Position numbers and translations under genes: made by a program. From Oikopleura dioica (taxonomy: Eukaryota; Animalia; Chordata): 64,000 nucleotides of DNA. The notes below the pieces were generated by a model. It made no database searches. It had not been told where the DNA came from and saw only the letters and a list, made by a program, of their open reading frames with translations. Positions within the stretch are counted from its first letter, which is position 1. Each line of letters opens with the position of its first letter. Shown here one piece after another: positions 40,065-62,685 of the stretch. The stretch is from assembly GCA_907165135.1 (NCBI GenBank), contig OU015569.1, forward strand, positions 7,812,001 through 7,876,000. The letters run 5' to 3'.

Positions 40065-41731
40065 ATGCTTAGAAAAGTTGAAGATCGGAATATCATTCTT
40101 CTTGGTCTTGGTTTTTTGTTTGTATACACGGCTTATCAGGAAAATTAGAGAGAAGCTAGATAGACTGAAATTAGATTGAAAACTGTCCATTTTTTCAATT
40201 TGAAAAGACAACGGCAGCAGTTTCTGAGGTTGTTCTGGATTCCTATAATAAAAACAATGAAGGTACTCACTGAAATAATTCTGCAATTCAATTATCAAAG
40301 CACACATCTCTGGATATGTTGGAATGGCTCTTAATTACGCGGGGACGACCTTGATGGCGCTCTTTGTGCCAGGCTTTTTACTTTTCCTGAGTCAAAAATC
40401 CTCGGTTATTCTTGGCTCAGTGCTATCGGTGATGATGGCGGGAAGTTACATTTACCCCACTCCGATCTCGATTTACCTGTTTTCATTTATTTCCGGTGTT
40501 GGCGGGGCCTTCATTTGGGTCGGCCAGGGTGCAATCGTGATTTCTAATTCAAGTATTATCTCGAAATTAAAATAAGCCTGATCAAATTTAAGATAACACA
40601 ACAATTGACAGAAACACTTCTGTTTTTTGGCTTCTTTACCAGCTATCACAGGTTTCTTTATTGAGATTCGAAAGTTATATTTTCCCTTAGTTTGGTGGAA
40701 CATTATACGTATTTTTTGCATGGCAAGGAAAGGAATTCGTTGATACACATGAACGGGTCGTTTTGTTTATACTGCTTGTTGGAATAGGCACCATTGGAAT
40801 TTTGGCTTTATGTTTCATAAAAACCATCACTGGTAAATATACAAGTCTCCTGGCTTTCAATCTAATCCTTAGCAGTTACGCCGGAAAATTGCATCGACAC
40901 GTCAACTTTAACGGCGAGCCAAAAGTTGAGACATCTGTTCGGCGGCATAAAAGAATCCTTCCGATTCTGGTACTCATACCACTTTGGCATGCTTTTCCTC
41001 ATTACTTGTTACATTGGTTTCGAACTCGCATTTTTTCAAACTATTTTTCCGACAGCTGTAGCTAATACAAAACAACTTGGTGCAGATTCGGACAGACTTA
41101 CTGGACTTATTGTTGTCTTCGTTGGAATCGGCGAAGTTACGGGCTCCTTTCTCTCTGGACTCGCATCAAATATTGAGAAAATTCGACGTGGGCCTATTGC
41201 CGCTTTTGGACTCATTATCGAAGGACCGTGTTGTGATAAGATGTGAACATTCAATTCCGAGCGTATTTAGCTCAGAGTAAAAAGCTCAAGACAACGTCGA
41301 AAAAGTATTTGCATTCCTCATAATTCTGCTGAACATTCCCTCTGATGCTGTCATCGAACCCGTTGAAACGATCGCTTTCATAGAGCCAATAGATCGGGTT
41401 TACTTGGTTATTTGTAGTACTCAAATAAGCTATAAGAATCCTTGACTCAGTGGAACTTCTCTACCTGGCAGCATTCATCATCGGCTTTGGCGATGCGTTG
41501 CTCAATGCACAACTCATGAACTTTATCAAAGCTACAACAGAAACTGACCGCGAAGCTGCTGCTGCTTTCATGCTTTTCAATTTCGCTGAGTCTGGTGTAG
41601 CTACGCTAGTATTCTTTATAGGCGATAGTATTAATCTTCATATACAGCTCCTTCTCCTTATGATTCTCCTCGTCGTCTGTTTATTTTGTTTTTTAAAGCT
41701 AGATTTGGACGTTCGAAGGAATCGGTTTTAA
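40065..41731 (+). CDS. MFSD11: UNC93-like MFS transporter
   Basis: Spliced N-terminus MLRKVEDRNIILLGLGFLFVYTAYQTTAAV...SGYVGMALNY, then IWVGQG, IDRNTSVFWLLYQ, YIGFELAFF, LNIPSDA and GFGDALLNAQ align with MFSD11/UNC93. Confidence 0.85.
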
Positions 41732-42429: not shown

Positions 42430-43744
42430 AGAAATTGATACTTTCAAACCGGGCAAATATTATCACTTAATTTTACACTTCAATATGGCTTCTTGTGATT
42501 CCTACTAATAAAGCCAAAAGTGCCCGCTTTCCTAAAAAAGAAAAAAACTTCATCATGCAACACTGGTATCTTGTCAGCCTCGCATGCGGGATTTATACGC
42601 TTGCCTGACAGGTATTCTTTTGACGGGGATGATTGTGTAGAAATCGGACGTTATTATCTTTACCACTATACAGTTCTTTCTACGACTCTTCTGGTTTTAA
42701 TCAACTGAATATGATATGAACCTGCATGAACGAAATGCAAGAAAAAATCGCGAATCTGTTTATATAAGAAATTGATTTTATTCAGGTTTTTGGTGAGGTA
42801 TCAGTTGGTTTCACAGTGGATTGATGATTGAGATTCTGATTTGACAGTAATGACAGCAACAAGTTCCTTTGCAGGAACAAGAAGAAAATTGGAAATCCTC
42901 TTCATAATTTCTCTGAACTTTTTCAACAAATCGAAACCGGGTTCAGAAACCGGTTCGCTCATTTCTGAAAGTCTTCAGCTGCGGGGTTTCTGCTGAGTCT
43001 TGATTTTGACTAAAAATTATTTTTAAGTAGAGTTTCAATTGCGTTAATGCTGACTTACTTTTTAAGATGCCGTGTCGGACCTTCTCAGATTCAGTAGAAT
43101 ACTGACTGACTGCTATGTGGCGTGACGCCCTCTCAACAACATGAGTTCTAGAGACAACGTAAATCTCAAACTGCGGTTCTGTTGACTCATATCAAAATCG
43201 GTCTTCTCGAAAGTGAACATATTTTAAGAAAAACGATTTACTGAAGTGTATCGTATAAAAATTTTTCCTTCATTATATAATGCCGGAAACTTCTAGTAAC
43301 CTGGATTTATTGCTTAGGAATCCGCAGCATTAGAATTGGCGTGAAATTTGCGGATCGCCTCGTTCCACCATTATATTCATCAAGCGATAATTTAGTCTTT
43401 GCCTGTCGCTTGTAGGGGAAATTCAACCGTTAACGCCATCGAGTGGCGCCATTTCCTCCTGGAGATTTAATCAATCTCCCGCTGAGAGTGATATCGGCAA
43501 TTTAAATAGCGATTTCGATTTTTTTTCTTGCAGAGATTGAAACAGAAGATCGAATGTACTGAAGATAGGCGTCATTATTGCAACTCGCATGGGAGTTGAT
43601 ACGTTAGGCAAATTGCACTTTAGACGTCTTTTTACCTTTTTCTTGGCATTTAACTTTATTCATGAAGGATCGGTTTATTCTTTTCAGAGTTATTAAGGAA
43701 GTTAAATAATATTGGCTTTTCTCGTCAAAATTAACCATAAAAAG

Positions 43745-46700
43745 CTAATGGTTCAACTGAGCTTGCCAGCTGGTCTACGGGGCTAAAAAGGTTCGCCGCC
43801 GCACGTCAAGTAGACTGTCTTGTCTGTGGAACAAACAGTGAATGCATAGGCAACCATTGCCAGTGCGCCAATGGATATACTGGAGATCAGCCTCTAGACT
43901 GTTTTCGGTCAAAAACTTGAATCAGAGACCTGATGTGCTCTTACCGATTTATCACGAGCCACCAGAGACAGATAGCTATCGAACTTGTATCTCACAAACG
44001 TGGAAGAAAATTGCAGATGTGGGCTCCCGTGGATACGCCATTGTTGATCCCTTTTTAGCTGCAAGTGTCGACGATTACCGCTCTTGCTTAGGCTTGTTAA
44101 GAGACTCCTCAGTAACGATTTATCTACGTGTTTCTATGGAATTCGGCTTTGTCGATCCTCGCTCGAAAATCAATGATCTCTGGGAAATCTATGAAGCTTA
44201 TGTGGATGGGTTCTATTTAGATTCACCGCCTAGTGACTTGTCAGAGTCGCTGGTTAGGGACTCTATTTATACTATCAAAACGATGAAAAGGTCGCTCAAA
44301 GCAGCGATCTCCGCTTCTGACGCAACATGGGACGCCAAGAAATTTTTTGAGAGCTTTTTAAGATAATTGTATTTGCCATAAAAATCATGTCAAAAATAAC
44401 TTACAGCTATTAAATCATCCGAATGCAAACTATCGTGCGGACTTCGTCGTCGTTTTCGAAGGATCTTATGCGAGATGGTCCGAAGCTTGTGGAACCCTTG
44501 GAGTGGGGCCTTATTGCAGAGCCAAAAACAGCTTCAAGCCGACTTTTGAAATAATCATGAGGAGAATAGCTCGTGGGCAGGCTCAACGTTCACAATTCGC
44601 TTCAATTATATACGATGTCAAACCTGCAGAAATGAAAGAACTTCTTTCTACGGCGAATTCTCAGGGATCAGGCATCTTATCCGTCAGTAATTTCGACAGC
44701 GCTGAAACCAATCGTCATGGCCCGTCTTACTGGGATTTTATGCTTCTGAATTTCTTACAAGACGAAGAGTGTGGATGTGTCGATGTAAACGAATGCGAAA
44801 TTAATGGACACAACTGCCATTTTCTTGCGGCTTGTGACAACACGATCGGCTCGTTTGCCTGTCGCTGCCCTGAAGGAATGATTGGCGATGGAGTCGATGA
44901 GGATGGTTGCATTCCAGATCCATGTGCAAAATGTGTGGAGGGAACAACTTGCTCTGCTGAGGGGAGCTGCATCTGCGACGAAGGTACTTTCGGAACAGGC
45001 TTGAAGTGCGATAAAAGTGACTCTATTTTTCCATTAAATCGACCAAAATCATTTGGCGACGAAGAGAACTGCGAAGACCCTTTCTGGATAGCCGCTGGAA
45101 ACCTAGCCCTAGAAGATATTCCAACAACGGTATTGGTTGATCTGAATGTCAATGCATTAGATCAGTACGCCAAATGTCTCCAGCTTCTTAAAGAAAATGG
45201 TGTGAAAATATATCACGATGAATCGCTCTGGAACGGATTCAAAGCATTCAACATAATTGCGTCAAAGCTTGAGCGAGTTCTGGCCACTTATGGTGACTTC
45301 ATTGACGGCATCTACTTGTCAAATGCGCCAAATAACCAGTTCGATCAATATGGCGGCGTAGATATGTTTGCTAAACTGGTGAATATGATCAAACTGCGAA
45401 ATCTTGGCGTGATTGTCGACGTCAGAAAACAAAAAGAAGCTGTCAAGCTGTTATCAGGATCGCTCAAAACAACAATTGGAAACCCCATTCCAGCAGCTGA
45501 TAAAGTAATTCTCTTCTTTGCAAACTTTAATGGAAGGTGTCCGATACATTTAACAAGAGTTTGAGCATTCAAACTACTTGGTATTTATCTTACGGCTATC
45601 CTATGTTAAATCATGTTTATGACACCGAAAAGATTGGATAATAAGTTGCGAACAGAAAACGGAAGGCGTTTTCTGTGATAGCGATTCTGAACTAATGCCC
45701 GCGATCGCACGTGGATTAATTTCAAAAACTCAGCTAGCTGGCATATTTTATTCGGTTTTGCCATCTGATACGGAAAGAGTTTTTAGGGCAGCTCAAGCTA
45801 AAAACATCGGATCAATCTTCGTCTCCTCGGCGGATATAAACGCGGGAAACAAAGCAGACTTCGATGATCAAATGGCTATGGAGTTGACTTACTCTCTGAA
45901 GGGACTTTGGCCTAAATGTGGATGCTATGACCATGATGAATGCTCTGTGGAAGACACAGACGAAGCAATTTGTCAGAGTGAGGAGGAGATTTGTGTCAAT
46001 ACTGATGGATCCTACACGTGCATTAATCCTTCAACTGCTCTTGGTTTATCTGGTCGAGCTCGCGCCATCGGTTGTTTCGATACTTGTGACGAAAAAGCGG
46101 AGTGTATTTTGGGAGCATGTCGGTGCAAACCAGGATTCGATGGAAATGGCCAAGGTTAGGGTGAACAATCTCATTTTTAAGCTTAGATTATCCAAGTTGG
46201 ATATATGCAACAATACGACGTGTATTTAGGAATAATTAATATATCTAAATACAAAGTCTTTGCGGTCAAAAATTGATAAATGCTAAGTTATTGCCCCTAA
46301 AAAGACTGCAATGCGCCAAAAAATGATAAGAAATTTATTATACCAATACGTCAACGACCAACGATCCGTGGCGGTCGGTGCGTGGATGCGTATTGGAACG
46401 AAATCTCCACAATGAAGGATGCTGTTGTTGTCCTTGAAATTTACTCCACGAAATGGATGCCCTGCATTGAATTGTTGAATAAAGAAGGAATCACACTTTA
46501 TGCAAAGATTGACGCAAAAGGAGGCAGCATGGATGATCCTGTCAGCGCCATAACAAAGAAATTTAACAACCTAAAGAGGGTATTTAATGGAAAAGTTAAT
46601 CCATATTTGACGAATCCAGGAAGAACATTTGAAACAAACTGGGTCTACGAGGCAATGGAAAACGCTCGCAATCAGAATTTAAAACTTGGGATTCAAGCAT

Positions 46701-49700
46701 CAGATGCCGAATGGTCGATTGAATGCGTGATTAAAAAGAAAATAGATCTCGTTGTGGTCTTCAAAGAACCAGTGAAAAAATTTACCCAGAGCTGTGGAGA
46801 AGGCGGCCCAGGACCATTTTGCGCGACGAGAGCAGCTAGAAATTTGATTTCTGAAATGGTTATAGCTTTGAATCAAGGAAAGCTAAATAAAGATGTCTTC
46901 GCCATCATTGCATACAATGCGAATGTGCGTGATGTCAAATCTGTGCTGGCTCTTTCCGAAACATTCAAAATCGACAGGGTTTGGCTAACAGAACGGCCTT
47001 TTTACTCGACAGTCCGCCCACGACTTTTAGATGCAGTTAAAAGAAGTGTTGCAAATGGAAAAGCAATCGATCAGTCAAGATGTGGTTGCAAAGATATTGA
47101 TGAGTGCCAGAAGGATATTTGTCATTCGAATGCAGTTTGCCAAAACACTGAGGGCTCCTTTGAATGCTCCTGTGGCTCTGGATTTGATGGTGATGGCCGC
47201 GTTTGCTTGACAATAAATGAATGCACTAAAGGAACACACGAGTGCTCGCCAAATGCAGACTGTCTTGATACAGTGGACGGATTCATCTGCGCGTGCGCCT
47301 CTGGTTTTGATGGGAACGGTAAAGTCTGCCAGGACGTCGACGAATGCGCAGAAAATAAAAACATTTGTGGCGAGAATTCAATCTGCACGAACACTCAAGG
47401 CAGCTTCAGATGCGAATGCGCATCTGGATTCGAGTCAAAAAATGATCAGTGTGTCGACGTTGATGAGTGTGCGCACTCCTTGCATAACTGCGCCGCCCAA
47501 TCTTTCTGTGAAAACACGGCTGGCAGTTTCATTTGCTCATGTAAAGAAGGTTTTGTCGGTTCCGGCATTGTTTGTAATGATATTGACGAATGTACAAGCG
47601 AAAATGCTTGTGCGGAAAATGCTCTCTGCACGAACAGTTTTGGAAGCTTTACATGCACATGTGCGCGAGGATTCGAAGGCGACGGTAAAACTCAATGCTT
47701 TAAAAATACTTGCAAGGAATGCAGCAGTGGAGCCATATGCAGTTCCACAAGCGAAGGATGTATTTGCCCCCCTGGAACCCGTGGTCCCGCTACGAAATGC
47801 GAGGAGCAAAAACTTATTATTCCTATTCGTTCCATCCCTCTTGTCTCACTCAAAGCGGGTAAATGTATAGACGAGTGGTGGGCGGAAATCGCAGCTCTAG
47901 GGAAGCGAGCTACTGTGTTACTTGTGTTTCCCGCGCGTACATGGCTACCTTGTATACGATTATTGCGCGATAATGGTGTGGATGTCTATCAACAGGTTAA
48001 CGCTAGAAAAAGTCTTTTTTCAAATATGAAAAGGTACAGAGGTATTCATAACTACAGTTAAGCTTGTTTTATCTTGTCTAGATATCTGACGAAGCAAGTT
48101 CAGCAGATAACTAGTGAATTCGGAGGAAAAGTAAACGGCGCATATTTTATGAATCCTGGCGCGAAAGGCTTCTCACAGGATCACTTTACTTCAGCGTTTG
48201 ATGAAGCTCGCCGTGCAGAATTGAAAGTAGGCCTACAACTCGCAGGTATTCAGTTCGACGCGAATACAGTGGCGGCAACTGATCTCTCAGTCGTCTTTAT
48301 CGGACACTTTAATGAGATGAGTACCAACTGTGGCGTACACGGGAAAGGTCCATTTTGTGGCGCGAAGACTAGAACATCGCAGACCATGTCAATCAAGCAA
48401 AATATCGCTAATGGAGTCTATGGTCCCGAGAAGATCGGAGCCATAGTGTTCAATGTCCCCCGGCGACATCTTGAAAATGTGTTTTCCCTGGCAGAAGGAG
48501 ATGACGTTGGATCAGTTTATGCGTCAGATTTTGGAAAAACAAGCGAGAAGAAACCTTCTTACTGGGAAGATCTCGCAAAAGGACAAATTGGAGCAAAGGG
48601 AAATCAAGACTGCGGGTGCAAAGACATCAACGAATGCGAAGAAACTCCAGATATTTGTGGATTAGAGGGATCATGTGAAAACATTGACAGCGAAGGTTAC
48701 AACTGTCAGTGTATCGATGGATTTACATTCAACGGAGAAACTTGTGTAGATTTCGATGAATGTCTCAGTGCAGTTTGCGATGAGAATGCAACATGTGAGA
48801 ATATGAATGGCGGATTTTCTTGTAAATGCGTTGATGGATTTGTCGGGGATGGTTTAACTTGCACTGATCTCAACGAGTGTGCTCTGGAAAATATTTGCGA
48901 TGAAAATGCCACCTGTGAGAATTTCGAGGGTGGGCATAGCTGTATCTGCAAACCTGGATTTTCTGGGGACGGAACATCCTGCGCGGATATCGATGAATGC
49001 ACTGCGGAGCCTTGTCCGGAAAACTCGAGTTGTGAGAATACGAGCGGATCATTTTCTTGTCAATGTCTTTCTGGTTACAAAATGAACCAAGGAGAATGCG
49101 TGAATGTTGATGAATGCGCGACTGGCATTCATAACTGCCATGAAATGGCTGACTGCGTGGATACAGATGGGTCCTTTGCCTGCTCATGTCGTCGCGGCTT
49201 CTCTGGCGATGGTGCAACATGTCAGCGACAACTGTGCACTCTATGTGCAGCCGGGTCTACTTGCACTGGCTCGGAATGCACTTGCTCTTCGGGTTTTAGT
49301 GGAAACGGCATCGCTTGCACAAGCTCTACATCTGCTGTGGTTCCAATAAACACACCGCCGATCATAAGTCCTAGAACAAGCGAGTGCATCGATCCCCTAT
49401 GGTCGGACATTGCTAAAGAACTGATGATCGAGCGAAAAGTTATACTCGATGGCGCTTCTGTAGGATGGGTTCCTTGCATTAAGCTTCTTACCCAGGCTTT
49501 TGCGGAAGTATATGCCACTGTCCATGTTAAACGCGTTGATTTATCAGACAACAAAAACATTCTGTCTCAAATCCAGGAGCTTATCGCTTTTGGCGACGCG
49601 TTGACCGGAATCCATTTCCAAACTGACGAGATTCTTACTTATGCCCTTGAAGAGTGGTCAGGATTATTTGATTTATGTCGAATAGCTGGGCTCAAAATTT

Positions 49701-52700
49701 CCATCGACGGATACAGGCATCGGGTCTAAAATGAAAGATCAGATTCAGTTAGAAGCGTTTTAAAACCGATAAAGCAACAACTGGGACATTCGATTTGCAA
49801 CAGAAGTTGATTTTATTGTTATTTTCGATGCGCCAGTGGCGGAGTTTGGTCTCAATTGTTTTGCAGGACATTCCCGAGGACCATTCTGTCGACAAAATCA
49901 AATCACCAAAGAAGAATTGAAAAAGATTGAAAATGCGGTAGAGATCGGACTATTTTCAAGGTCGAAATTCGGTGCAATAATCAGGTACTAGTTCAAAATC
50001 AAAGATACTTTCCTAAAAGATCTAGGAAAAGATCTGAATCAAATACTAAGCGGAGTGATATTCTCGATAGAAAGTTGGAAAGTGAAATGACCAAAAATGG
50101 GCAATGACTGACATATCTTTAGAAACGTCCCGGAGCGGCTGGTGAGTCAAGTAATCGCAGATGCTGAAAAGTCTGTCGCTGGGAGTTTGTTTGTGACTTC
50201 CCATGGGCTGCGTGCTGCCACGTTTCAGCTTCCGGAGTATTGGCCTGACTTTTTAGAAGAAGTTAAAAGAATTAACACCCAGAGGAAAACAAGTTCATGT
50301 GGCTGCCACGAAATTGATGAATGCGATAGCAATCCGTGCCCACTAAACTCCAAGGTAGAAGGACCATTTTTTCACTGTCACAGAATCTTCGCATAGTGCT
50401 CGAATAATGTTGGTAGCTTTGATTGTGTTTGCGATGAAGGTTTTGCCTTGACGCCGGATGGTCTTTGTCGGGATCTGGATGAGTGCTCACTTGGTAAGCA
50501 TTCAAGATTCTCAAATAAGAGAATCCTTGAGCAGTTACAATTACTTTTTAAAATTCTAGGACTCCATGATTGCTCCGCTAACGGCGAATGTGTTAACTTG
50601 TCGCCAGGTTTCCAGTGTTCATGTCTACCCGGATTCGAAGGAGACGGCAAAAGCTGTGTGGATATTGAAGAATGTGAGCGCCAAATTCACAGGGAATTTT
50701 TACAATCGAAAATTATTTTTTAATTATTATCAAATTATTTTTGAACTTTTAATTCTTTTTTACATATGACTCATATGAGTGCAGTCTTCAAAATAACCAA
50801 TTTTGCAAAAGTGATTGTATAAATACGGAAAGTTGCTCGGAAAACGCGGATTGTCAAAACACCTTGGGAAGTTACACGTGCTCTTGTGAAACTGGATTCA
50901 CTGGAACCGGTGAAAGTTGTGAGGACGTGGATGAGTGCGCAATACTCGATTCCATTTGCTAGGGCTTTTTTCCATATTAATGAAATACTATGACCGGATA
51001 GCTAAAAGAAATCAATTAATCTTTACTGTGAAAAGTTTATACTAATATTTGTAATATTAAAGATTTATCATCGACTATAAAAATGAAAAAAATGGGTGAA
51101 ATAATTCCACTTCCCTCTAGTGAAGCCCATTCCAGTGCGTCAAATGGAGCCTGTCTGAATACGGAAGGTAGCTTCTTATGCTTTTGCCTCCCTGGGTTTA
51201 GCGGAAATGGTCTCGAAGAATGTGATGACGTTGACGAATGCTCAAGCCAGAGTTTTCTCAAGCACATGCATTCAAACAATAATTATTTTAAAAATATTCA
51301 ACTATTTAAAACTGACGGTTCTTAGAAAACTCTAATGAAGTGGAGCTCATCTTTGCCACTCTATGAGCATTTGTCAAAACACGCCAGGGTCCTACTCTTG
51401 TCAATGTGCTTTTGGCTGGAGTGGAAACGGTCGCCAGTGTGAGGAGGACATTTGTCAACTTTGTGACGCCAGTGCTTCTTGTCAAGATGGAGACTGCTCT
51501 TGTTCACCAGGATTTTCTGGCTCAGGCTATACCTGTCCGACAGCCGTAAATCCCGTTCCCATTTCGAGCTCGCCGAAAATCGAAGACAATCTCTGTGCTG
51601 ACAGTTAGTGGTTACTCACAAAAATCTATAATTTTTTTTATTTTTTTCATCAAAACTTTTTGATATCACTGTCGAGAGTTATTGGAAAAATGTCTCTAAA
51701 AAACAAGGCATTGCATTTATACTACGAAATATGGACAAATCTTGGATACCCTGTATTACCTTGGTAAGAAGTGAAGGTGCGATTGTTCTTGGCTCAACCG
51801 ATACTATGGATGTGAAAGTTGCAGAAGAACTCGCTTCTGAGTTGGAACTTGATGGCTTCTATTTTGAATTCGACGATTATAGGAACGATAAAGCTCTCGA
51901 AATCTTCCGAGAATTAAAAAATAGCGGCCATTTCATCGCTATAAATGGCCATGGACGCGCCTGGGACATCACCACTTTACTGAGTATCGATTTGGTGATC
52001 ACCTTCAGTGGAAGTGAGTTCGACTTCCGTCACAACTGTATTTTTGATCTCTGCATCGAAGACGAAGATACTCTTAGCGAAATTCTTACTGCTATTGACA
52101 GAAAATTCATCTCGCGGACCCGATTTGGAACAATTATTCACGAAGCAGATGGGACAAACATAAACTCATTATTCGAAAATGTACTGCGATTCCGCTCTCC
52201 GCGTTCCATCTTTGTGTCAGACAAATTGCCGACAGAATATTCTGACATCATCGACGAATCAGTTCGACTTAATAATGAGATGCTGGCGTTTACTGCGCAG
52301 GAGGTAGACTTCTCCGACTGTGGCTGCAAAGATATAAACGAATGCGTCACAATGGTCAAGCCGTGCCCAGATGATTCTACATGCACAAATATGAACGGGG
52401 GTTTCCGCTGTAGCTGTAATGAGGGATACGTTGATTCAATTGATACATCTGGCAATTTCATGTGCAAAGATGTTGACGAGTGTCAAGATAAAAATATCTG
52501 CGCTAGGCATTCGTCTTGTATTAATAAAAAGGCTCGTTTTCTTGTGAGTGCGATGCTGGATTCAGACCAGGACCCCTTGGTGTGTGCTTGGACATTGATG
52601 AGTGCCAAGAACAATTGGACAAATGCGATATTATGTCCACCTGTATTAATATCGAAGGACATTACGCATGTTCCTGCATTGATGGTTTCGAAGGCGACGG

Positions 52701-55700
52701 GTTCTCTTGTGAAGACGTTGATGAGTGCATAGGTGTAAACACATGTAGTCCAAATGCAGTTTGCCAAAATACAGTTGGCAGCTATACTTGTTCTTGCAAA
52801 GATGGATTCGTTGGTGACGGGCAAAACTGCGAAGACTTTAACGAGTGCTCGATGCGACCCTGTCATTTGATGGCCGATTGTAACAACTCAGTCGGAAGCT
52901 TCCAATGCGAGTGTATTGAGCCTTCGTGGAATGGGAACGGATTTAGCTGCACAAAAGACATCTGTTCTGGCTGCATTGAGCAGGCACGTTGCGAAGACAG
53001 CGGATTGTGTAGTTGTCCACCTGGCTTTAGCGGGTCTGGATATTCTTGTCCTAAGAATACTCTTGCAATTCCAGTGAAAGAAACGGTTGATAATTTGTTT
53101 CCATGTAAGATATCGATAAAATTTCGTTTTCCTTCAGAAAAGCACACGTGCGTACATGTTATACCGCGCTCAGAATGCAAATTAACCGTCCTCAGTCGCC
53201 CCATCTTCAGTCGATTTTGACGTGTGCACAGATGAATACTGGAGTCAAATAGCATCGGACGATGATAACTGCGTTTTTATTGACGCCAGTGTTCTTTCCG
53301 ACTCACCGTGCTTGGATGAAGTGTCGCGTAGAAAAATTCAGATTTTTGTCACTGTCGATGTTTCAGACGTTTCTATCGAAAATATTATGGAAGAAATAGT
53401 GGCTATAACGGAATCATCGCCAGTGAGACTATCCGGAATTCATCTGAAAAATCCGGAAAGGGGAAACAATTTAAAAGCCGATCGTAAATTTGCCAGTGTT
53501 GCTGTAGAATGAACAGTGCAGATAATATTTCATCAATATGTTTCATCCTCAATAGAATACCGAAATGGGCTTTGACGATCCTTCATTCGACGTCATTTTT
53601 GAATATATCCGTAGCCTTGGGCTCAAAATATCTATACTCGGATATGGACAACTGTGGTCTATTAATACAGTCCAAAAAATCGACACCATTGTGGTCTTCG
53701 AGGGCGGTTACGATGACTTTATGTTAGACTGTGGAGAATTTGGTGTGGGTCCGTTCTGCAAAGAAGGTCGACTGGGTGCAAATGCTATCAATGAAGTCAT
53801 TTACTCCGTTAAAAAGAGGTGATAGAAAGAAGTAAATATTCAATTTTACATCATTTTTTTATCGAAATGATAATACATCTATGTAATATAGACTTTTATT
53901 TATATCACCCAACAGGCGATTATGTCGATCGAGGAAAATTTTTAACGTTTTTCTTCGACATTCCCATGGAAGACATTGAAATTTTACTCGACGAGCATTT
54001 CGAAGGTGACCTCGGTGGAGGTATCTTCATCTCTGATCAAAAACTCGACTCTGTTACATACAGACCATCGTATTTCCAATATCTTCAGCATCTTGTTCTA
54101 AAAAAATCTCGTGAGAGGAACAAACTTTCAAACTGTGGCTGCCGAGATGTTGATGAATGCGCTACCGGAAAATCAACTTGCCCAAGTCACTCAGATTGCA
54201 CAAACATTGCTGGAGGATATCGATGCTCTTGCTCGGCCGGATTCGCGGAAATCCTAAATGAAGGCTCGATGACATGCATTGATATTGATGAGTGTTTTTT
54301 TGGAACCCATAAATGCTCCATCAATGCAGTCTGTCATAATACCGTTGGGGGTTTTGACTGTACATGCAACAGTGGCTTTATTGGCGATGGAGAAATCTGT
54401 GAAGACATAGATGAATGCAACGATTCCACAGAAAGCTTATGTGCCGCGAATTCCCACTGCGTCAATTTCGAAGGCACCTTTGCTTGTATTTGCGATTCCG
54501 GATTTTCAGGATCGGGTAGAAGTATCCAAGGATGCCAAGACGTTGACGAATGCGCTCTTCGTACAGCGTCATGTCCAGAGAACTCCAAGTGTATAAATGT
54601 GCTAGGCGGGTTCACTTGTAACTGTAATCCTGGCTACGAAAGAAGATCTGATCAGTGTGTCAATATCGACGAATGCGCAAATGACTCAGGTTAGGCTGCT
54701 ACACTGCTCAAATATATATGAGATTATATCAATCGAAAGGGAAAATATCTTTTACTTCAATACTAAGCTATATACAGAAAATAAACGTATCGTCGTTTCA
54801 TCCATATTTAGACCGGTGTCACCCAATGGCCAAATGTACGGATACAGACGGAAGTTACTTTTGTGAATGTCTAGGAGATCTTCAAGGCGACGGCTTCAAC
54901 TGTGCTCAGGCTCGGATTCGACTACCGCTTTGAGTCAAACCTTTGACATTTAGATTTATGAAGCGTCTACTAGAGTAGCATGGCAAGCGTTTCCAGTCTA
55001 ATTCCACAAAAGGACATATGTAGCTCGTGCACTTCGATTGCGGATTGCGACGGAGATTCTTGCCTGTGCCCAGCTGGATACAAGGGCACTGGGGTTGAAT
55101 GTCCGACGACTGACGGTCTCATGGTCCCGATGACTCCATCTTTGATTCCGTCTTTCGACGACAAGACGCGTGAATGCACAGATGATTACTGGTTAACGAT
55201 CGCTGAAATACCTGGATCTTCCGTTATAATCGACAACCCATCTGGGAAGTGGAAACCGTGTATGCACGATATACTCACTAAGGGCGTTGATGTTTACATT
55301 CGTCTTTCAACAACAGCAGAAGACGCGGTTAACAAGCTGAACTTTATCAGCTCAAATTTCAGAAACAGATTTTCGGGAGTTTACTTGGAGCCTTGCTCGG
55401 AGACTAAAATAACTATGGTACGTACAATGATGGTGACCATGTTTTCTAAAGAATTATTTTACTTGATATTTGTTTTTGAAATTGTGGAAAATACTTATTT
55501 ATAGACACTCGCAAAATCTCTTGGTCTTAAAGTTGCTGTCGATTTATCAGACTGTTTTGTTTTCGACGATTTCATGAAGTCCGCTGATATGATAACCCTC
55601 TATCGCGGAAATATGGAGAACTTCGATGGTAGCTGCGGCCATTATGGAAAGGGTCCATTCTGCTCTCATGATCGAAGCGACGATATCGACCGTTTGTACC

Positions 55701-58700
55701 AATGGAGCGTGTCGTTAGCAGACAAGTCTAAAGTTCCGAAGTTCGTTTCAATGATCTTCGAAGTTCCAGCATCAGGGTTTACGACTGCGGTTGGTAGTCA
55801 TTACAGGATCATGGGAATCGTTCATGAGCGTTGCGGAAAAATATAAAACGGTAGCTTTCGAAAAAAGAACCGATTTACGTCAATAGAGAATTGCTCTCTT
55901 CCGTCTGACATGTTTCCATTTTTTTCATGTTTTTTTCGTTTAAAATATGTTAATCATATCTATTCCACGCAATCCTTCACTCTATGATTATTCCTTAACA
56001 GCCAGCATTTTCGCGGAGGGATGTTTATAACTGACTCAACCCAGACTGGTCAATTAAGACCCAGTTACTTTAGAGCAATAAGTAACCTGGTTCTTGACCA
56101 TAAAGAGCTACAGACGCCTTGCGATTGCATTGAAATTGACGAATGCGCGGAAGAGCTGGCCGAATGCCCCCCGAAATCGGAGTGCAAGAATTTGGTGGGC
56201 ACGTACGATTGTATTTGCGACGCTGGATTTGAGAAAGTTTCCTCTGGAGAGTGTGTCGATATCAATGAATGTCGACGAGAATCCGGTATTTTTTATATTT
56301 TAAACTAATCAATACCTTGTGCTCTCTAGGTCTCTGCCACTCGGAAGCTGTTTGCATCAACACTATCGGCAGTTTTGATTGCGCTTGTAAAGAAGGTCTT
56401 TTTGGATCTGGCAAAAATGAGAGAAATGGTAAATTAACTTCACGTAGAAATAATTCAAAGTCAAATTCTATAGGATGTGTTGATGCGGATGAGTGCAGGA
56501 TGGACAGTAACAAATGTGCATTTAACGCTATCTGTAAAAATACTCACGGTTCTTACGAATGTACTTGTAACGAAGGCTACACTGGAAATGGACATATTTG
56601 TGAAGACGTCAATGAGTGTGTAGAACTCACGCATGAATGTCCAGAAAATAGCAAATGTTTCAATAACGATGGATCATACTTCTGTGAATGCCTAAGGATA
56701 GTGTCTTATATAGAGAAAATTAATTAGAGAAGATTTTGTTTGAATTTTTTTTTTATCGATAAGAATTGATAAAGCTAATTTAAACGCAATCAAAAGTGGC
56801 TACGAATCGTCGGGACAAACTTGCGTTGATGTTGATGAATGCTTGCTTGGCAGTCACGAATGTCATTTGATGGCGGAATGCGAGAATACAGCCGGAAGTT
56901 ATTCTTGCATGTGTATTGATGATTGGGACGGTGACGGAATCACTTGCTCCCAGCACATCTGCGATCTTTGTTCAAGTGAAGCGCATTGCGAAGAAAATTC
57001 ATGCTTTTGCAACAAGGGGCTTCAAGGAAACGGTTTCTAAAATCCTACACATGATCCACTTTTATCGAGAAAGCGGATTTTTAGGCAACTTTATTTAAAC
57101 CAAAAAAGGATCTGGAATTGCTTGCGGTCCAGCCAAATTCCCGTTCATCGTTCATCAAGATCAGTCTTGCAATGATTTGTTGAAGAACCTCTCTCTCGAA
57201 AAGACCATGTTCATCTTCACCGTTCCAAATAATCCATGCTCCGAGGAGATTCGAGGCAAGGGTGGCGAGACATGGATTTTTTCCGACAATATTCAACCTG
57301 AGAAATATACTGGAATATTGGTTTCAGAGCATTTACTCTCCAGCCATTACGTCAACTCTCTTCGCAAAGAAGGTCTTCTTGTAGGTCAAGGTTCAAGAAA
57401 TCTTTTCTTCTTCGAAAGGTGCTTATGATAGTATTTATCTTTCTTGACTCTATAAAAGGCGTTGATCTTACAGATTCTTTTAATAACGTAATCGCGAGCA
57501 CTGAAATTCTAGACGAGCTCGATTTCATTCTCTACTCGGCTGGACCCATGAATAGTTATTTGGAGAAATGTTCAGACTCAAGCTTCGACCTGTGCTTTAA
57601 AAAGGCGTCACATAATCAAGGCGCTGAATTAAAAAATGTCACCAAGAACAGATCAATCGGGCACATCCTTTATAATGTTGCCTGGGACGACTTTCCACGC
57701 GTGCTAGACACGTTTGAGGCTTTTGGAGGAAATATCTTCTTGACTGACAAAAACCCAGACGAAGCGGGTTTTCCGATATACTTAGATGACGAAAAACTCA
57801 TACTTGCAAGAAAGAGCTCTGGAAACTGCGGATGTTCGGATATTGATGAGTGTGCCGCTAAGATCCACGATTGTCCTGAGCACTCCACGTGTGTGAATAA
57901 TTACGCGGGCTTTTCATGCGAGTGTGATAAGGAAAGAGTTTATTTTCAATTATTTAAGATCTTTTCTATGTGGTGCCATATTTACATAGTTGGTCCTCAA
58001 AACAAAAAATCAATTTAAAACTTGGCAAGGGATTTATAAAAGAATCTGGCGAGTGCCACGACATTGACGAATGTCAAATTGATTCTTGTCCTGTTCACTC
58101 CGAGTGCGTCAATACAAATGGCTCTTTTGACTGCAATTGTGTCGACGGATTTATCATGGATGAAGGCGAGTTTATTTGTCAGGATGTGGACGAGTGCTCC
58201 TTCCGCGTGAACGTTTGCCTCGCTGACGAGAAATGCAATAATGAAATTGGCAGTTTTTCCTGCGAAATGGATCGTAACACAAATTATGACGAATGTCAAT
58301 TAGGAGAGGTTCATAGTTTGCTGCCATAAAACGAATAAGAACTCATAGTATTAGCGAGAGAAATTTTAGTGGCTGAACCTTATAAAGGCACCCATTTGTG
58401 CCCAGTTAACTCGGTATGCACCAATTCATATTACAGAATTACTCCTCGTGGTTACACTTGTTCGTGTGCCCCCGGTTTCGAATGCAAAAACTGCTTTACT
58501 GGGATGAATGTTGATGATTACGCATGTGACGATATTGACGAATGTACTGAAATGCTTCATGACTGTCACGAGTCAGAGATTTGCTCTAATCTACCGGGAA
58601 CTTACCAGTGCCTCTGTGAGACTGGTTTTGAGCTTTCAGCAAGCGGAGAGTGCGTACCAGTGAGGAATAAAATAAGAAAATCACTAATCACCATCAACTT

Positions 58701-60216
58701 TGCCTAAGATATTCAATTCAATATTGACAATTAATTAATTAAATTTTGATAATTTTAATCCTGCTAATAGTTGACCCGTGCGCGCATGGTAACCACAACT
58801 GTCCATCGTTGGCTGATTGTACCGCTATTTCTTCTGGAGATCCCAGTGAACCGACCTTCCAGTGCTCCTGTCAGCCAGGATACGAGTTTGAGCCTTTAAA
58901 CTCTAACAATTCTGTCATTATTTGTTCTGACGTTGACGAGTGCGAGAAGCATCAACACAATTGCTCTGGAAATGAAATCTGCCATAACCTCGAGCCAGGA
59001 TTCGAGTGTCACCAAGCAGATTGCGCGCAACTTGACTGCTCGCATTCGTGTCTGAATAACACATGCGTTTGTCCTGAAGGAATGAAGCTCGACGACACTG
59101 AAATAAACTGTCAGATTAAAGACAGCGAAGTTGATATCATGTGCGATGGTGATTCTATGAAGGTAGACCAGTTTAAACATCAAGAAATCGGTTAATCATT
59201 TTATTCAGGTCCTCGTTCGGAAGGCATTTTATTCGCAGATGTCAGTACTCCAGTTGGCCGATCCTACTTGCAACATGGAAAATGGAAACGTAGTTGATGT
59301 CAACGAAGAATATTTTATGGTAACGGCGCCACTGGACGGATGTGGAACTCGAGTAGAAGTCGATGATAAGCACATTTTGTTTATTAACACGCTTTACGAC
59401 AATAAAGGAAGAGCTCAGGATCCGAAATCGGGAGCTTGGATTCGAACACATTCTGTTGTAACGTTAGAGTTTGCATGTGCATATCAAACTGTTGTCGATG
59501 TTGACAGTGAAGTCACTGTTGAGCCAGCTTACGTCAAAGGTTATATTAAAAGTATTTACGACAAAACATAATCCTAATTTTCAAGGATCTAGTCGAGGCA
59601 CTGGCAATTTCGATTTCAAGCTGCAAACTTACTCCGACTCAACATACAGTACTGTTGCAAATGATGGCTTTAAAACTGGAGAACTTATGTTTTTCGATAT
59701 AAGACTTGACCGAGCTGTTGAAGGAGTTCAGTTTACAGGTAATTATTCATCATGAATGGCATTGTCAATCGCAGATCGGTAAATAATTCATACGTAAATT
59801 CACGTCAGCCTGTTCCGAAATTATTTACCCAGTGCGATTTTCTGATTTTAATTTAGTGACGGACTGTACGGTTTGGGACAAAGCAAAAGAAAAACACTAT
59901 AATGTGATAGAAGATCAATGCCTCGACAGCTATATCAAGGCAGCTTCGCTAGATCCTGTTGTTGTGCCATTCCGAGCAAGATTTTCATACATAGGTAGGA
60001 CTAGTGTGAAGAAAGCCAGCGCATCAGAATTTAGTGTTTGAGTTTTTGGGAGCAAAAGACGCCTCCGAAGTGACACTTTCGTGTAAGATAGCGATTTGCC
60101 ATCCTGGCGATGTCTTCTATTCTCAATGCGCAGCAGGATGCGACCTCCCAAACCAGCCTAGTCCCGAGAGCCGAAAACGAAAGCGGCGTAGTTCAGCCCT
60201 TGACATCATTTTTTAA
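43745..60216 (+). CDS. Giant extracellular protein: 9 Spherulin-4/GH135-like barrels alternating with calcium-binding EGF arrays (~39 cbEGF), C-terminal ZP domain and furin site
   Basis: About 39 D(I/V)(D/N)EC...C.N..G(S/G)(F/Y).C repeats. Nine ~250-aa non-EGF repeats begin near 43930, 45020, 46330, 47810, 49335, 51545, 53060, 55120 and 57120. ZP-N reads CDGDSMKV...APLDGCGT...LEFACAY; ZP-C reads CTVWD...EDQC...FEF...[14 protein letters not shown] precedes the stop at 60216. The 5' end and signal peptide are not resolved, and two homopolymer frameshifts are present. Confidence 0.82.
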
Positions 60217-61067: not shown

Positions 61068-62685
61068 TTATTGAATCTTTTTCCATCGCAGAAATCGTTG
61101 AGCTTTTAGGATTCTAGTAAGGCAGTAGGATAACGAGAAAAATTTCTGTTGAACAAAAATCGTGGTAACGATGGCGATAGTCAGAAAAGGCAAAAAAGCC
61201 CAGAAGTTGGTAAGGTGAACAAAAGTCCGCCAGCACCAAAATAAAACGCCAAAACATTTTGCGGCGTTTTCGAAAACTGAGGTCGAATATGGCTGAAGAA
61301 TTTGCTGATTGTCGTAGTACGTTTTGTCGGCAAAATGTTCATCTAGCATTTTGTCTTTCTCGCGCCAAATTTTCTCCAAAAATCGCTCTGGATCTTTTTT
61401 GGCAGATGCTATTTCATATCTATTTAAAATAGTGATTACACTTTCTTTCAATGGTAAAAAAGTACCTTTTTAGGACGACATTTGTGACAGGTGGCATACA
61501 ACCGGTGAAGAGTGCTGGCTCGTGTTGGGGTATATGTTGTTCGTAGGAAGTCGTTATATCGTAAATGGCATCAAAGAAGTTATCCTCGTTTTCCATCAAA
61601 AATTTGAAGCCTGTTGTACGAGGCAAAAGTAGATGAGAAAGCGGTTCGACGCCGGCTTTTTTTGCGAATGAGTTCGATTTCCGGATCATGTCGGGCCAAT
61701 AGACCGTCCCTTCGGGGAAGAAGTAGAACGACACTGAAAATAAGTTTGAATCAGTCTATAAAATATGCATCAATTAATGTCTAAGGATTGAGCAATAATG
61801 CTGAATTATGAACTCGGCCTGGGCTTAGAAGGTATGCAATCGGCTTACCGTTGTCCATTGTCTTAGAGTAAAGCTCCAAGCAATCCAGAATATGCTCCCT
61901 GTCGTCTTCGAACCGCCTCTTCAGAAATACGTGGCAGGCGAGGGAAAGAAACCACCCGACTCCAGGTACAAATCTAATCATAACTCTACTCCAGCTCAGA
62001 AACTTCACCCACCTTAATGGAGCCTTGAGGGAGAAGCGAAGACCGCCAACTTTTCCGTGATTGTACAGAAAATTCAGAATAATAAGCCAGTCCATTCTTG
62101 TGCGGTGGTTGGCGAGAATAAGAATCTTTTTATCTTTTGGTCGAAAAGTTTCTTAAAAAGAGGTCCTGACTTTGCATTAAACTAGTTTATCACCTCCGTA
62201 ATGTTTGTAAGAACAATTGTGTAAACACCGAAGGCCAAGGACTACAATTTGATTCCAGGTGACTTGGACGAAGTTGAAAAAGAAAAATAGAAGCTTGGGC
62301 GAAAGCAAAAGCAGGACAGCACACACATAGAAGGCGTAAGTGAAACTAAATAAGGAGAAACTCGAAAGACGTATGACGAGTGAAATAGTCTAAAATATTG
62401 ATCGGGCAGAATGAGTCCGCCACTAAGAAGAACTTTCGGTTATCAAGTAGAACCTACTGTCCACATAATTAATAAAAGCAATAACTGGTAGAAAAGGAAA
62501 TAATGCGGAAAGTGTACGGGGAAGAAGAAAACAACATACCCACTAATTCCAGTTAGTACTAGGACGGCGCTGAAGGTAGTTCCTTTTGCAAAATTAAGAA
62601 TCTTCTGCGACCATGTCTGCTCGCCTGGGGCCATCACCAGTTTCGCATACTCCTTGTGCTCCATCTCTGCATACTTATCCGCCAT
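61068..62685 (-). CDS. LCLAT1: Lysocardiolipin acyltransferase (AGPAT family)
   Basis: NHRTRMDW, LKAPL..VPGVGW, VFLKRRFEDD, FFPEGT, LLPRTTGF and DAIYDITTSY match LCLAT1 motifs. Start position approximate. Confidence 0.88.

Follow-up and report, generated by a model that had tools for sequence, protein, structure and literature searches.

Nine divergent Spherulin4/GH135-type barrels in a large EGF/ZP protein gene of Oikopleura dioica

Barrels of the GH135/Spherulin4 type are familiar from stand-alone enzymes acting on exopolysaccharides of microbes, fungal galactosaminogalactan being one example. The GH135 prototype, Aspergillus Sph3 (CAZy GH135; PDB 5C5G/5D6T), is an endo-α-1,4-N-acetylgalactosaminidase, and the PelA, GH114 and GH191 relatives act on Pel-type polymers. 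GH191, GH166 (PelA), GH114 and GH135 were proposed to form one galactosaminidase clan (PMC12054363). In the present work, we analyzed a stretch of 64,000 nucleotides of the O. dioica contig OU015569.1 (positions 7,812,001 to 7,876,000 of the forward strand; further called the window), in which a single plus-strand gene at approximately 43.59–60.22 kb encodes nine tandem barrels of this type within an EGF/ZP protein. Sph3, by comparison, is a single membrane-anchored fungal enzyme of the galactosaminogalactan gene cluster. The larvacean barrels are only about 7–10% identical to it and differ by added disulfides, a CGxxGxGPFC loop and the lack of the catalytic pair in eight copies.

Other described systems resemble the protein in part. 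By analogy drawn from general knowledge, the chitinase-like proteins (dead GH18 barrels such as YKL-40, IDGF and SI-CLP) are likewise secreted glycan binders built on a barrel without the catalytic acid, but they belong to another GH family, usually have one barrel per protein and do not occur within EGF/ZP polymers. Such dead glycosidase barrels of animals keep glycan binding and act as lectins. In uromodulin, α-tectorin, ascidian HrVC120 and oikosin 20, EGF modules are likewise followed by a ZP module at the C-terminus, with a putative basic cleavage site; the larvacean protein is several times larger, and to our knowledge no EGF+ZP matrix protein of that group carries glycosidase-type barrels. 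ZP modules form polymers once they are cleaved at a basic site of this kind, and arrays of calcium-binding EGF (cbEGF) modules form stiff rods. The five-module cbEGF runs with the D-x-D/N-E-C signature are also found in fibrillin-type arrays (oikosin 19 has been described as a homologue of fibrillin-1), but the larvacean protein has no TB/8-Cys domains and its arrays are linkers between barrels.

No paper linking Oikopleura with GH135, Sph3, galactosaminidase or spherulin was found, in agreement with the earlier note on this DNA, made from the sequence alone, whose author was not aware of any description of the architecture. The house-proteome paper reports EGF, ZP, lectin and other domains and no glycosidase-like domain (PMC3390340), and a 2026 preprint inventory of O. 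dioica glycoside hydrolases contains GH6, GH9 and GH16 only. Animals are not entirely without Spherulin4 annotations, since a ‘Spherulation-specific family 4’ protein was listed in a nematode secretome (PMC10531923). The sponge biomineralisation protein ‘Spherulin’ (PMC3163562) was considered and set aside as an apparent coincidence of names; it was named after spherulites, and the paper mentions neither Pfam nor Physarum. The domain family is a known one. What appears to be undescribed is how far it has diverged here, that it is used nine-fold in an animal EGF/ZP protein and that catalysis was lost in eight copies.

The explanation that we favour, with a probability of about 0.6 for the whole, is that the gene encodes a very large secreted extracellular-matrix protein (roughly 4,500 aa) of an Oikopleura-type larvacean, with eight dead glycan-binding barrels and one possibly active barrel, most likely placed in the filter house or another glycan-rich matrix.

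Relationship of the nine copies to Spherulin4/GH135

Nine diverged domains of approximately 250 aa (210–275 aa after exon joining) were found between the EGF arrays. They could be aligned over their full length at 14–30% pairwise identity, and all nine have four conserved Cys residues and end in CGC, from which the sequence passes into the following EGF module. A tblastn search of the 64 kb with copy 3 as the query retrieved copy 4 (E 3e-28) and copy 1 (E 1e-11), and outside this gene gave nothing below E 2. The search and the end-to-end alignment bear out the nine copies of the earlier note, and all the motifs it quoted from copy 1 were located, in the order given there, in plus-strand stop-free segments at 43.7–60.2 kb. 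The barrels are positioned as follows (the exon ends given here and below for parts of the gene are approximate).

43926–44778, plus strand: barrel 1, pieces 43926–~44345 and ~44407/44431–44778
45019–45925, plus strand: barrel 2, pieces 45019–45536 and 45646–45925
46328–47089, plus strand: barrel 3, single exon
47807–48619, plus strand: barrel 4, with a GT-AG intron at 48034–48081
49331–50306, plus strand: barrel 5, three exon pieces, with an intron at 49985–50122
51543–52327, plus strand: barrel 6, pieces 51543–51602 and 51677–52327
53062–54142, plus strand: barrel 7, four exon pieces
55115–56128, plus strand: barrel 8, three exon pieces
57132–57835, plus strand: barrel 9, shorter and more diverged than any other copy, with an intron at 57385–57458

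When copy 3 was compared by phmmer with 1.84 billion representative proteins, only 32 relatives were obtained, all of them marine-metagenome proteins of the same EGF-barrel architecture. The full-length domains of these relatives were used to build a 32-row alignment (A2), for which an exon-fragment alignment of the nine copies (A1) was dropped, as it had put strand-4 pieces on strand 8. Microbial loci were chosen by the motif DGIFFDE, and 120 ORFs from them were scored with the A2 HMM. Matches below E 1e-3, reaching 43.6 bits at best, were given by 28 of these ORFs; for most of the other ORFs with the motif no match was listed even at E 10, and no ORF listed above E 0.1 exceeded 5 bits. All ten of the matched ORFs that were checked proved to be bona fide bacterial Spherulin4 proteins (Pfam 92–167 bits), and their alignment (A3) was compared with A2 using hhalign. 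A match of the two families over nearly the whole domain (207 of about 224 columns) had a probability of 98.9% (E 1.1e-17); when A3 was compared with only the nine window copies, the values were 98.7% and E 2e-16. In the reverse direction, the bacterial Spherulin4 HMM was run over 816 stop-free segments of the window and its top eight hits all fell in this gene; spliced barrel 1 scored 38.1 bits, colinearly, over profile positions 3–218.

The bacterial Spherulin4 proteins (for instance, the ORFs on L078, L006 and L033) are the nearest relatives found outside the larvacean group. They are single-domain proteins with invariant DGIFFDE and FE motifs, no conserved Cys and no EGF or ZP partners. 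On the Sulfurimonadaceae contig L006 (4692–5601) two DGIFFDE matches lie about 890 bp apart and perhaps mark tandem Spherulin4 genes or domains.

Window barrel 3 and a relative's ninth-type barrel were modelled with AlphaFold2. Both models are confident (pLDDT 93.0 and 93.5, pTM 0.90) and show eight β/α units. Foldseek alone returned generic TIM barrels for these models. In the structure comparison that the earlier note had proposed, the predicted (β/α)8 barrel was closest to Sph3, followed by GH191 enzymes and PelA at 13–14.4, with the general barrel background near 12–13; IDGF-2 and SI-CLP were among the generic barrel matches.

Single-sequence annotation speaks against the assignment. The gathering cut-off of Pfam Spherulin4 (PF12138) is 30.2 bits, and no single copy reaches it, the best being a barrel-1 counterpart with 20.6 bits (E 3.4e-4). 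Window barrel 1 scored 15.8 bits (E 0.011) over its C-terminal half, and most copies had no match to this model as single sequences. Spherulin4 was nevertheless the commonest weak Pfam match among the relatives (5/32 members, best E 3.4e-4, always colinear). When the PDB was searched by sequence with copy 3, a barrel-1 counterpart and the A2 profile, nothing meaningful came up and Sph3 went undetected; word-indexed profile searches with A2 and A4 returned the same relatives only, with no larvacean–microbial intermediate. The barrel domain is invisible to routine Pfam annotation. Since the family profile and profile–profile comparisons, the reverse HMM search and the predicted structures agree, the domain is a divergent homologue of the Spherulin4/GH135 (β/α)8 glycosidase barrel. 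The family named in the earlier note was confirmed in this way, through the match to verified members, even though the Pfam check it had suggested failed for single copies.

Catalytic residues and what the barrels may do

The D166A variant of Sph3 is inactive (bioRxiv 10.1101/113696), and the verified nucleophile and acid/base residues of Sph3 were given as ‘Asp196/Glu222’ (PMC12054363). We read ‘Asp196’ as a slip for Asp166; the reading is ours, and the paper itself does not say so. The corresponding residues in the bacterial alignment A3 are the invariant D of DGIFFDE on strand 4 and the invariant E of FE on strand 6. Both columns were mapped onto the nine barrels through hhalign.

Barrel 1: nucleophile column D (codon 44220–44222), acid/base column E (codon 44458–44460)
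Barrel 2: nucleophile column S, acid/base column F
Barrel 3: nucleophile column T, acid/base column K
Barrel 4: nucleophile column M, acid/base column I
Barrel 5: nucleophile column Q, acid/base column D
Barrel 6: nucleophile column E, acid/base column S
Barrel 7: nucleophile column K, acid/base column E
Barrel 8: nucleophile column E, acid/base column R
Barrel 9: nucleophile column S, acid/base column A

Only barrel 1 kept acids at both positions, and the other eight copies have no catalytic pair. Barrel 1 is also the only one of the nine with the invariant Tyr of strand 1, and its VDGFYLD and VVVFEG correspond to VDGIFFDE and VVVFEG of the bacterial proteins. In the barrel-1 counterparts of the relatives the nucleophile column keeps Asp and the acid/base column also holds an acid; none of their other barrels has the pair, and Lys is frequent there at the acid/base column. 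An arrangement of nine active barrels that use other residues, as in a processive multi-enzyme, could draw on the Glu in the nucleophile column of barrels 6 and 8 and on the Glu and Asp in the acid/base column of barrels 7 and 5, respectively. We regard it as very improbable, because acids stand at both positions in barrel 1 only and the acid/base column is otherwise mostly Lys, Arg, Ile, Phe, Ser or Ala, with Lys conserved there in the relatives.

Outside the catalytic pair, most or all copies retained several residues that are invariant in the family, namely Pro and Trp close to strand 1, the Asp preceding strand 6 (9/9 copies), Ser/Thr of strand 8 and P-x-Y at the C-terminus. All barrels also share a lineage-specific loop, CGxxGxGPFC, with two conserved Cys, placed just after strand 6 and adjoining the acid/base position (46793–46822 in barrel 3); bacterial Spherulin4 proteins do not have it. 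The net charge differs strongly between copies (+14 with pI 9.5 for barrel 3, +6 for barrel 4, −18 for barrel 6 and −20 for barrel 7), which may reflect different ligands or partners, or electrostatic pairing.

These features have to be weighed against the view that the barrels are structural or protein-binding beads, in which an enzyme fold was reused and no carbohydrate is bound. The catalytic pair is missing from eight of nine copies, a charge range of +14 to −20 would suit electrostatic self-assembly and the extra disulfides stabilise the fold, all of which would fit such beads. The invariants of bacterial Spherulin4 (Trp after strand 1, Asp before strand 6, Ser/Thr of strand 8, P-x-Y) are, however, kept in most or all copies, and the dead chitinase-like barrels of animals retain glycan binding, so that we consider a purely structural role unlikely. 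Because eight copies lost their catalytic residues, the probable role of the protein is to bind or cross-link a polysaccharide, not to digest one, as far as this can be judged from the residues.

EGF arrays, the ZP module and the structure of the gene

The gene was traced as a series of plus-strand stop-free segments separated by short gaps, a pattern of many small introns. The bounds of the earlier note (43745 and 60216) fit this series: the stop codon is at 60214–60216, and a probable ATG exon lies slightly upstream, at 43589. The parts outside the barrels are listed below.

43589–43669, plus strand: probable first coding exon, in which the ATG precedes a signal-peptide-like hydrophobic stretch (MGVDTLGKLHFRRLFTFFLAFNF...), as judged from the sequence
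43816–43905, plus strand: short six-Cys EGF-like module 5' of barrel 1 (frame 0 translation)
43902–43905 (no strand given): T4 run with the frame change between the EGF-like module and barrel 1
44779–45018 and 45926–46327, plus strand: shorter inter-barrel linkers
47090–47806, plus strand: five Ca-binding EGF modules and one short EGF, between barrels 3 and 4
48620–49330, 50307–51542, 52328–53061, 54143–55114 and 56129–57131, plus strand: arrays of the same make-up, read from translations
57836–59135, plus strand: terminal run of about seven EGF-type modules, from barrel 9 to the ZP module
59136–60213, plus strand: ZP module, about five exons

The EGF/ZP architecture that had been read by eye was recovered by Pfam. 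EGF_CA/EGF_3 arrays were matched in the two longest exons, in five tandem stretches each (EGF_CA E 1.6e-40 and 2.9e-35), with further matches in other exons. ZP-N was matched with E 8.5e-10 (39.3 bits; cut-off 24.7) in segment 59167–59568, the match itself covering ~59200–59487. The exons 3' of ZP-N show a ZP-C-like pattern of conserved Cys, by reading of the translation only, and a basic furin-type cleavage site, RKRKRR, was likewise read from the translation at 60172–60189.

Barrels and EGF modules occupy common stop-free exons, e.g., 46301–48058 and 44362–45561, and therefore are not parts of separate transcripts. That the whole 16.6 kb is one continuous mRNA we infer from the sequence. The possibility of a faulty gene model or of microbial contamination, the barrels then being part of another gene or of foreign sequence, could be raised by the frame change at 43902–43905. 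It is hardly credible in view of the shared exons, the short spliceosomal introns that interrupt the barrels and the same module order on independent marine-metagenome contigs. Short introns, together with relatives from the marine plankton, fit a source in the O. dioica complex.

The frame change itself was inspected. No GT-AG intron gives a sensible join at this place and the space is too small for an intron, while one T added to the T4 run gives a continuous reading from the EGF-like module into barrel 1. The module at 43816–43905 is of the same type as the short EGF that precedes every other barrel, and its C-x2-C-x5-C-x4-C-x-C-x8..C pattern is that of the modules before barrels 4–9. The frame change is probably a one-base homopolymer miscall in the assembly; a real frameshift is possible. 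Among approximately 30 introns of the gene, some do not start with GT. The intron of barrel 1, running from 44340 or 44352 to 44406, has an AG acceptor and no GT donor (AA or GA instead); the ortholog supports a position between W-x-x-K and LL-x-HPN, which implies the AA start.

Far fewer introns were seen in the related species, where four barrels and their EGF arrays lie in one 4.1-kb exon. The intron-poor related loci are the following.

L121, 792–4916
L122, 465–4472

The flanking genes look unrelated: a multi-pass membrane protein is encoded upstream (40324–41731, plus strand), and a minus-strand gene, acyltransferase-like by eye only, lies downstream (61068–62095).

Age of the array, its likely place and its meaning

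Two metagenome contigs of a relative (L121 and L122), with approximately 45–50% protein identity, are colinear with the window gene. In L121 one ORF of 1374 aa spans barrels 1–4 with their EGF arrays, and barrels 5 and 6 come next. In L122 one ORF of 1335 aa spans barrels 8 and 9, likewise with EGF arrays; the ZP-N exon follows 65 nt later and then the same series of ZP exons as in the window. In a maximum-likelihood tree, window barrels 1, 2, 3, 5, 6, 7 and 8 each paired with one barrel of the relatives (support 94–100), and therefore the nine-fold repeat predates that split. The barrel-1 group adjoins the bacterial group (94/87) in this tree, which is unrooted and sparsely sampled. Its bacterial sequences were motif-selected, fungal, amoebozoan and nematode members were not included, and given that sampling a donor of a possible horizontal transfer was not inferred.

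Tunicates acquired cellulose synthase by horizontal transfer. As a tentative scenario, which we hold to be possible but doubtful, a larvacean ancestor may have received a microbial GH135/Spherulin4 gene in the same manner. It would then have been fused to an EGF/ZP gene and amplified nine-fold, with one copy kept enzyme-like and eight turned into lectins.

In the working model of the favoured secreted matrix protein, the ZP module would polymerise into filaments after cleavage at the basic site, with the EGF arrays serving as stiff spacers. The eight dead barrels would act as lectin-like modules for multivalent polysaccharide binding, by analogy to the dead GH18 chitinase-like proteins, and barrel 1, judging from its residues, may still cut or transglycosylate a GalNAc-type glycan. 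Such filaments would bear side arms with eight glycan-binding beads at regular intervals and possibly an active glycosidase or transglycosylase at the tip, and polysaccharide fibres would be tied to the protein filament at regular spacing in the filter house or another glycan-rich matrix.

Several observations weigh against this model. The location and the ligand are guesses. In barrel 1, Ser replaces the second invariant acid, the E of DGIFFDE that adjoins the nucleophile, and the barrel-1 counterparts of the relatives have Asp, not Glu, at the acid/base column; because of these two substitutions, barrel 1 may be inactive too. ZP-C had no Pfam match on its short exons, and the frame change at 43902–43905 means that the 5' end of the gene is not cleanly resolved. 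The primers for four oikosins of the EGF/ZP type (oik19, 20, 25 and 28a) did not match the window, with 7–9 mismatches, which is chance level, a weak comparison as the lineages differ. Table S4 of PMC3390340 gives oikosin sizes such as 42 and 153, far smaller than this protein.

Another explanation concerns the place of the protein, namely that it belongs to the egg coat or to another ZP-type matrix, of the ascidian vitelline-coat EGF+ZP kind, and is not a house component. EGF repeats followed by ZP are the make-up of vitelline-coat precursors such as HrVC120, and no link to any named oikosin was found here. On the other hand, oik20 carries ZP and several oikosins carry EGF arrays, so that the architecture fits house proteins as well (PMC3390340), and we see the egg coat as a possible although rather unlikely destination.

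A secreted protein of the kind we favour would be a new example of a pseudo-glycosidase lectin and, on the evidence of its sequence family, would point to a hexosamine-type polysaccharide ligand in a chordate relative. In the house, the evident matrix rich in glycans of this animal, it is a candidate for joining protein filaments and polysaccharide fibres at fixed spacing. If the horizontal-transfer scenario is true, the larvacean house or another matrix would contain or capture an α-1,4-GalNAc/GalN-type polymer undescribed in animals. Alongside cellulose synthase, the gene may then be a second example of tunicate matrices shaped by a carbohydrate gene from microbes.

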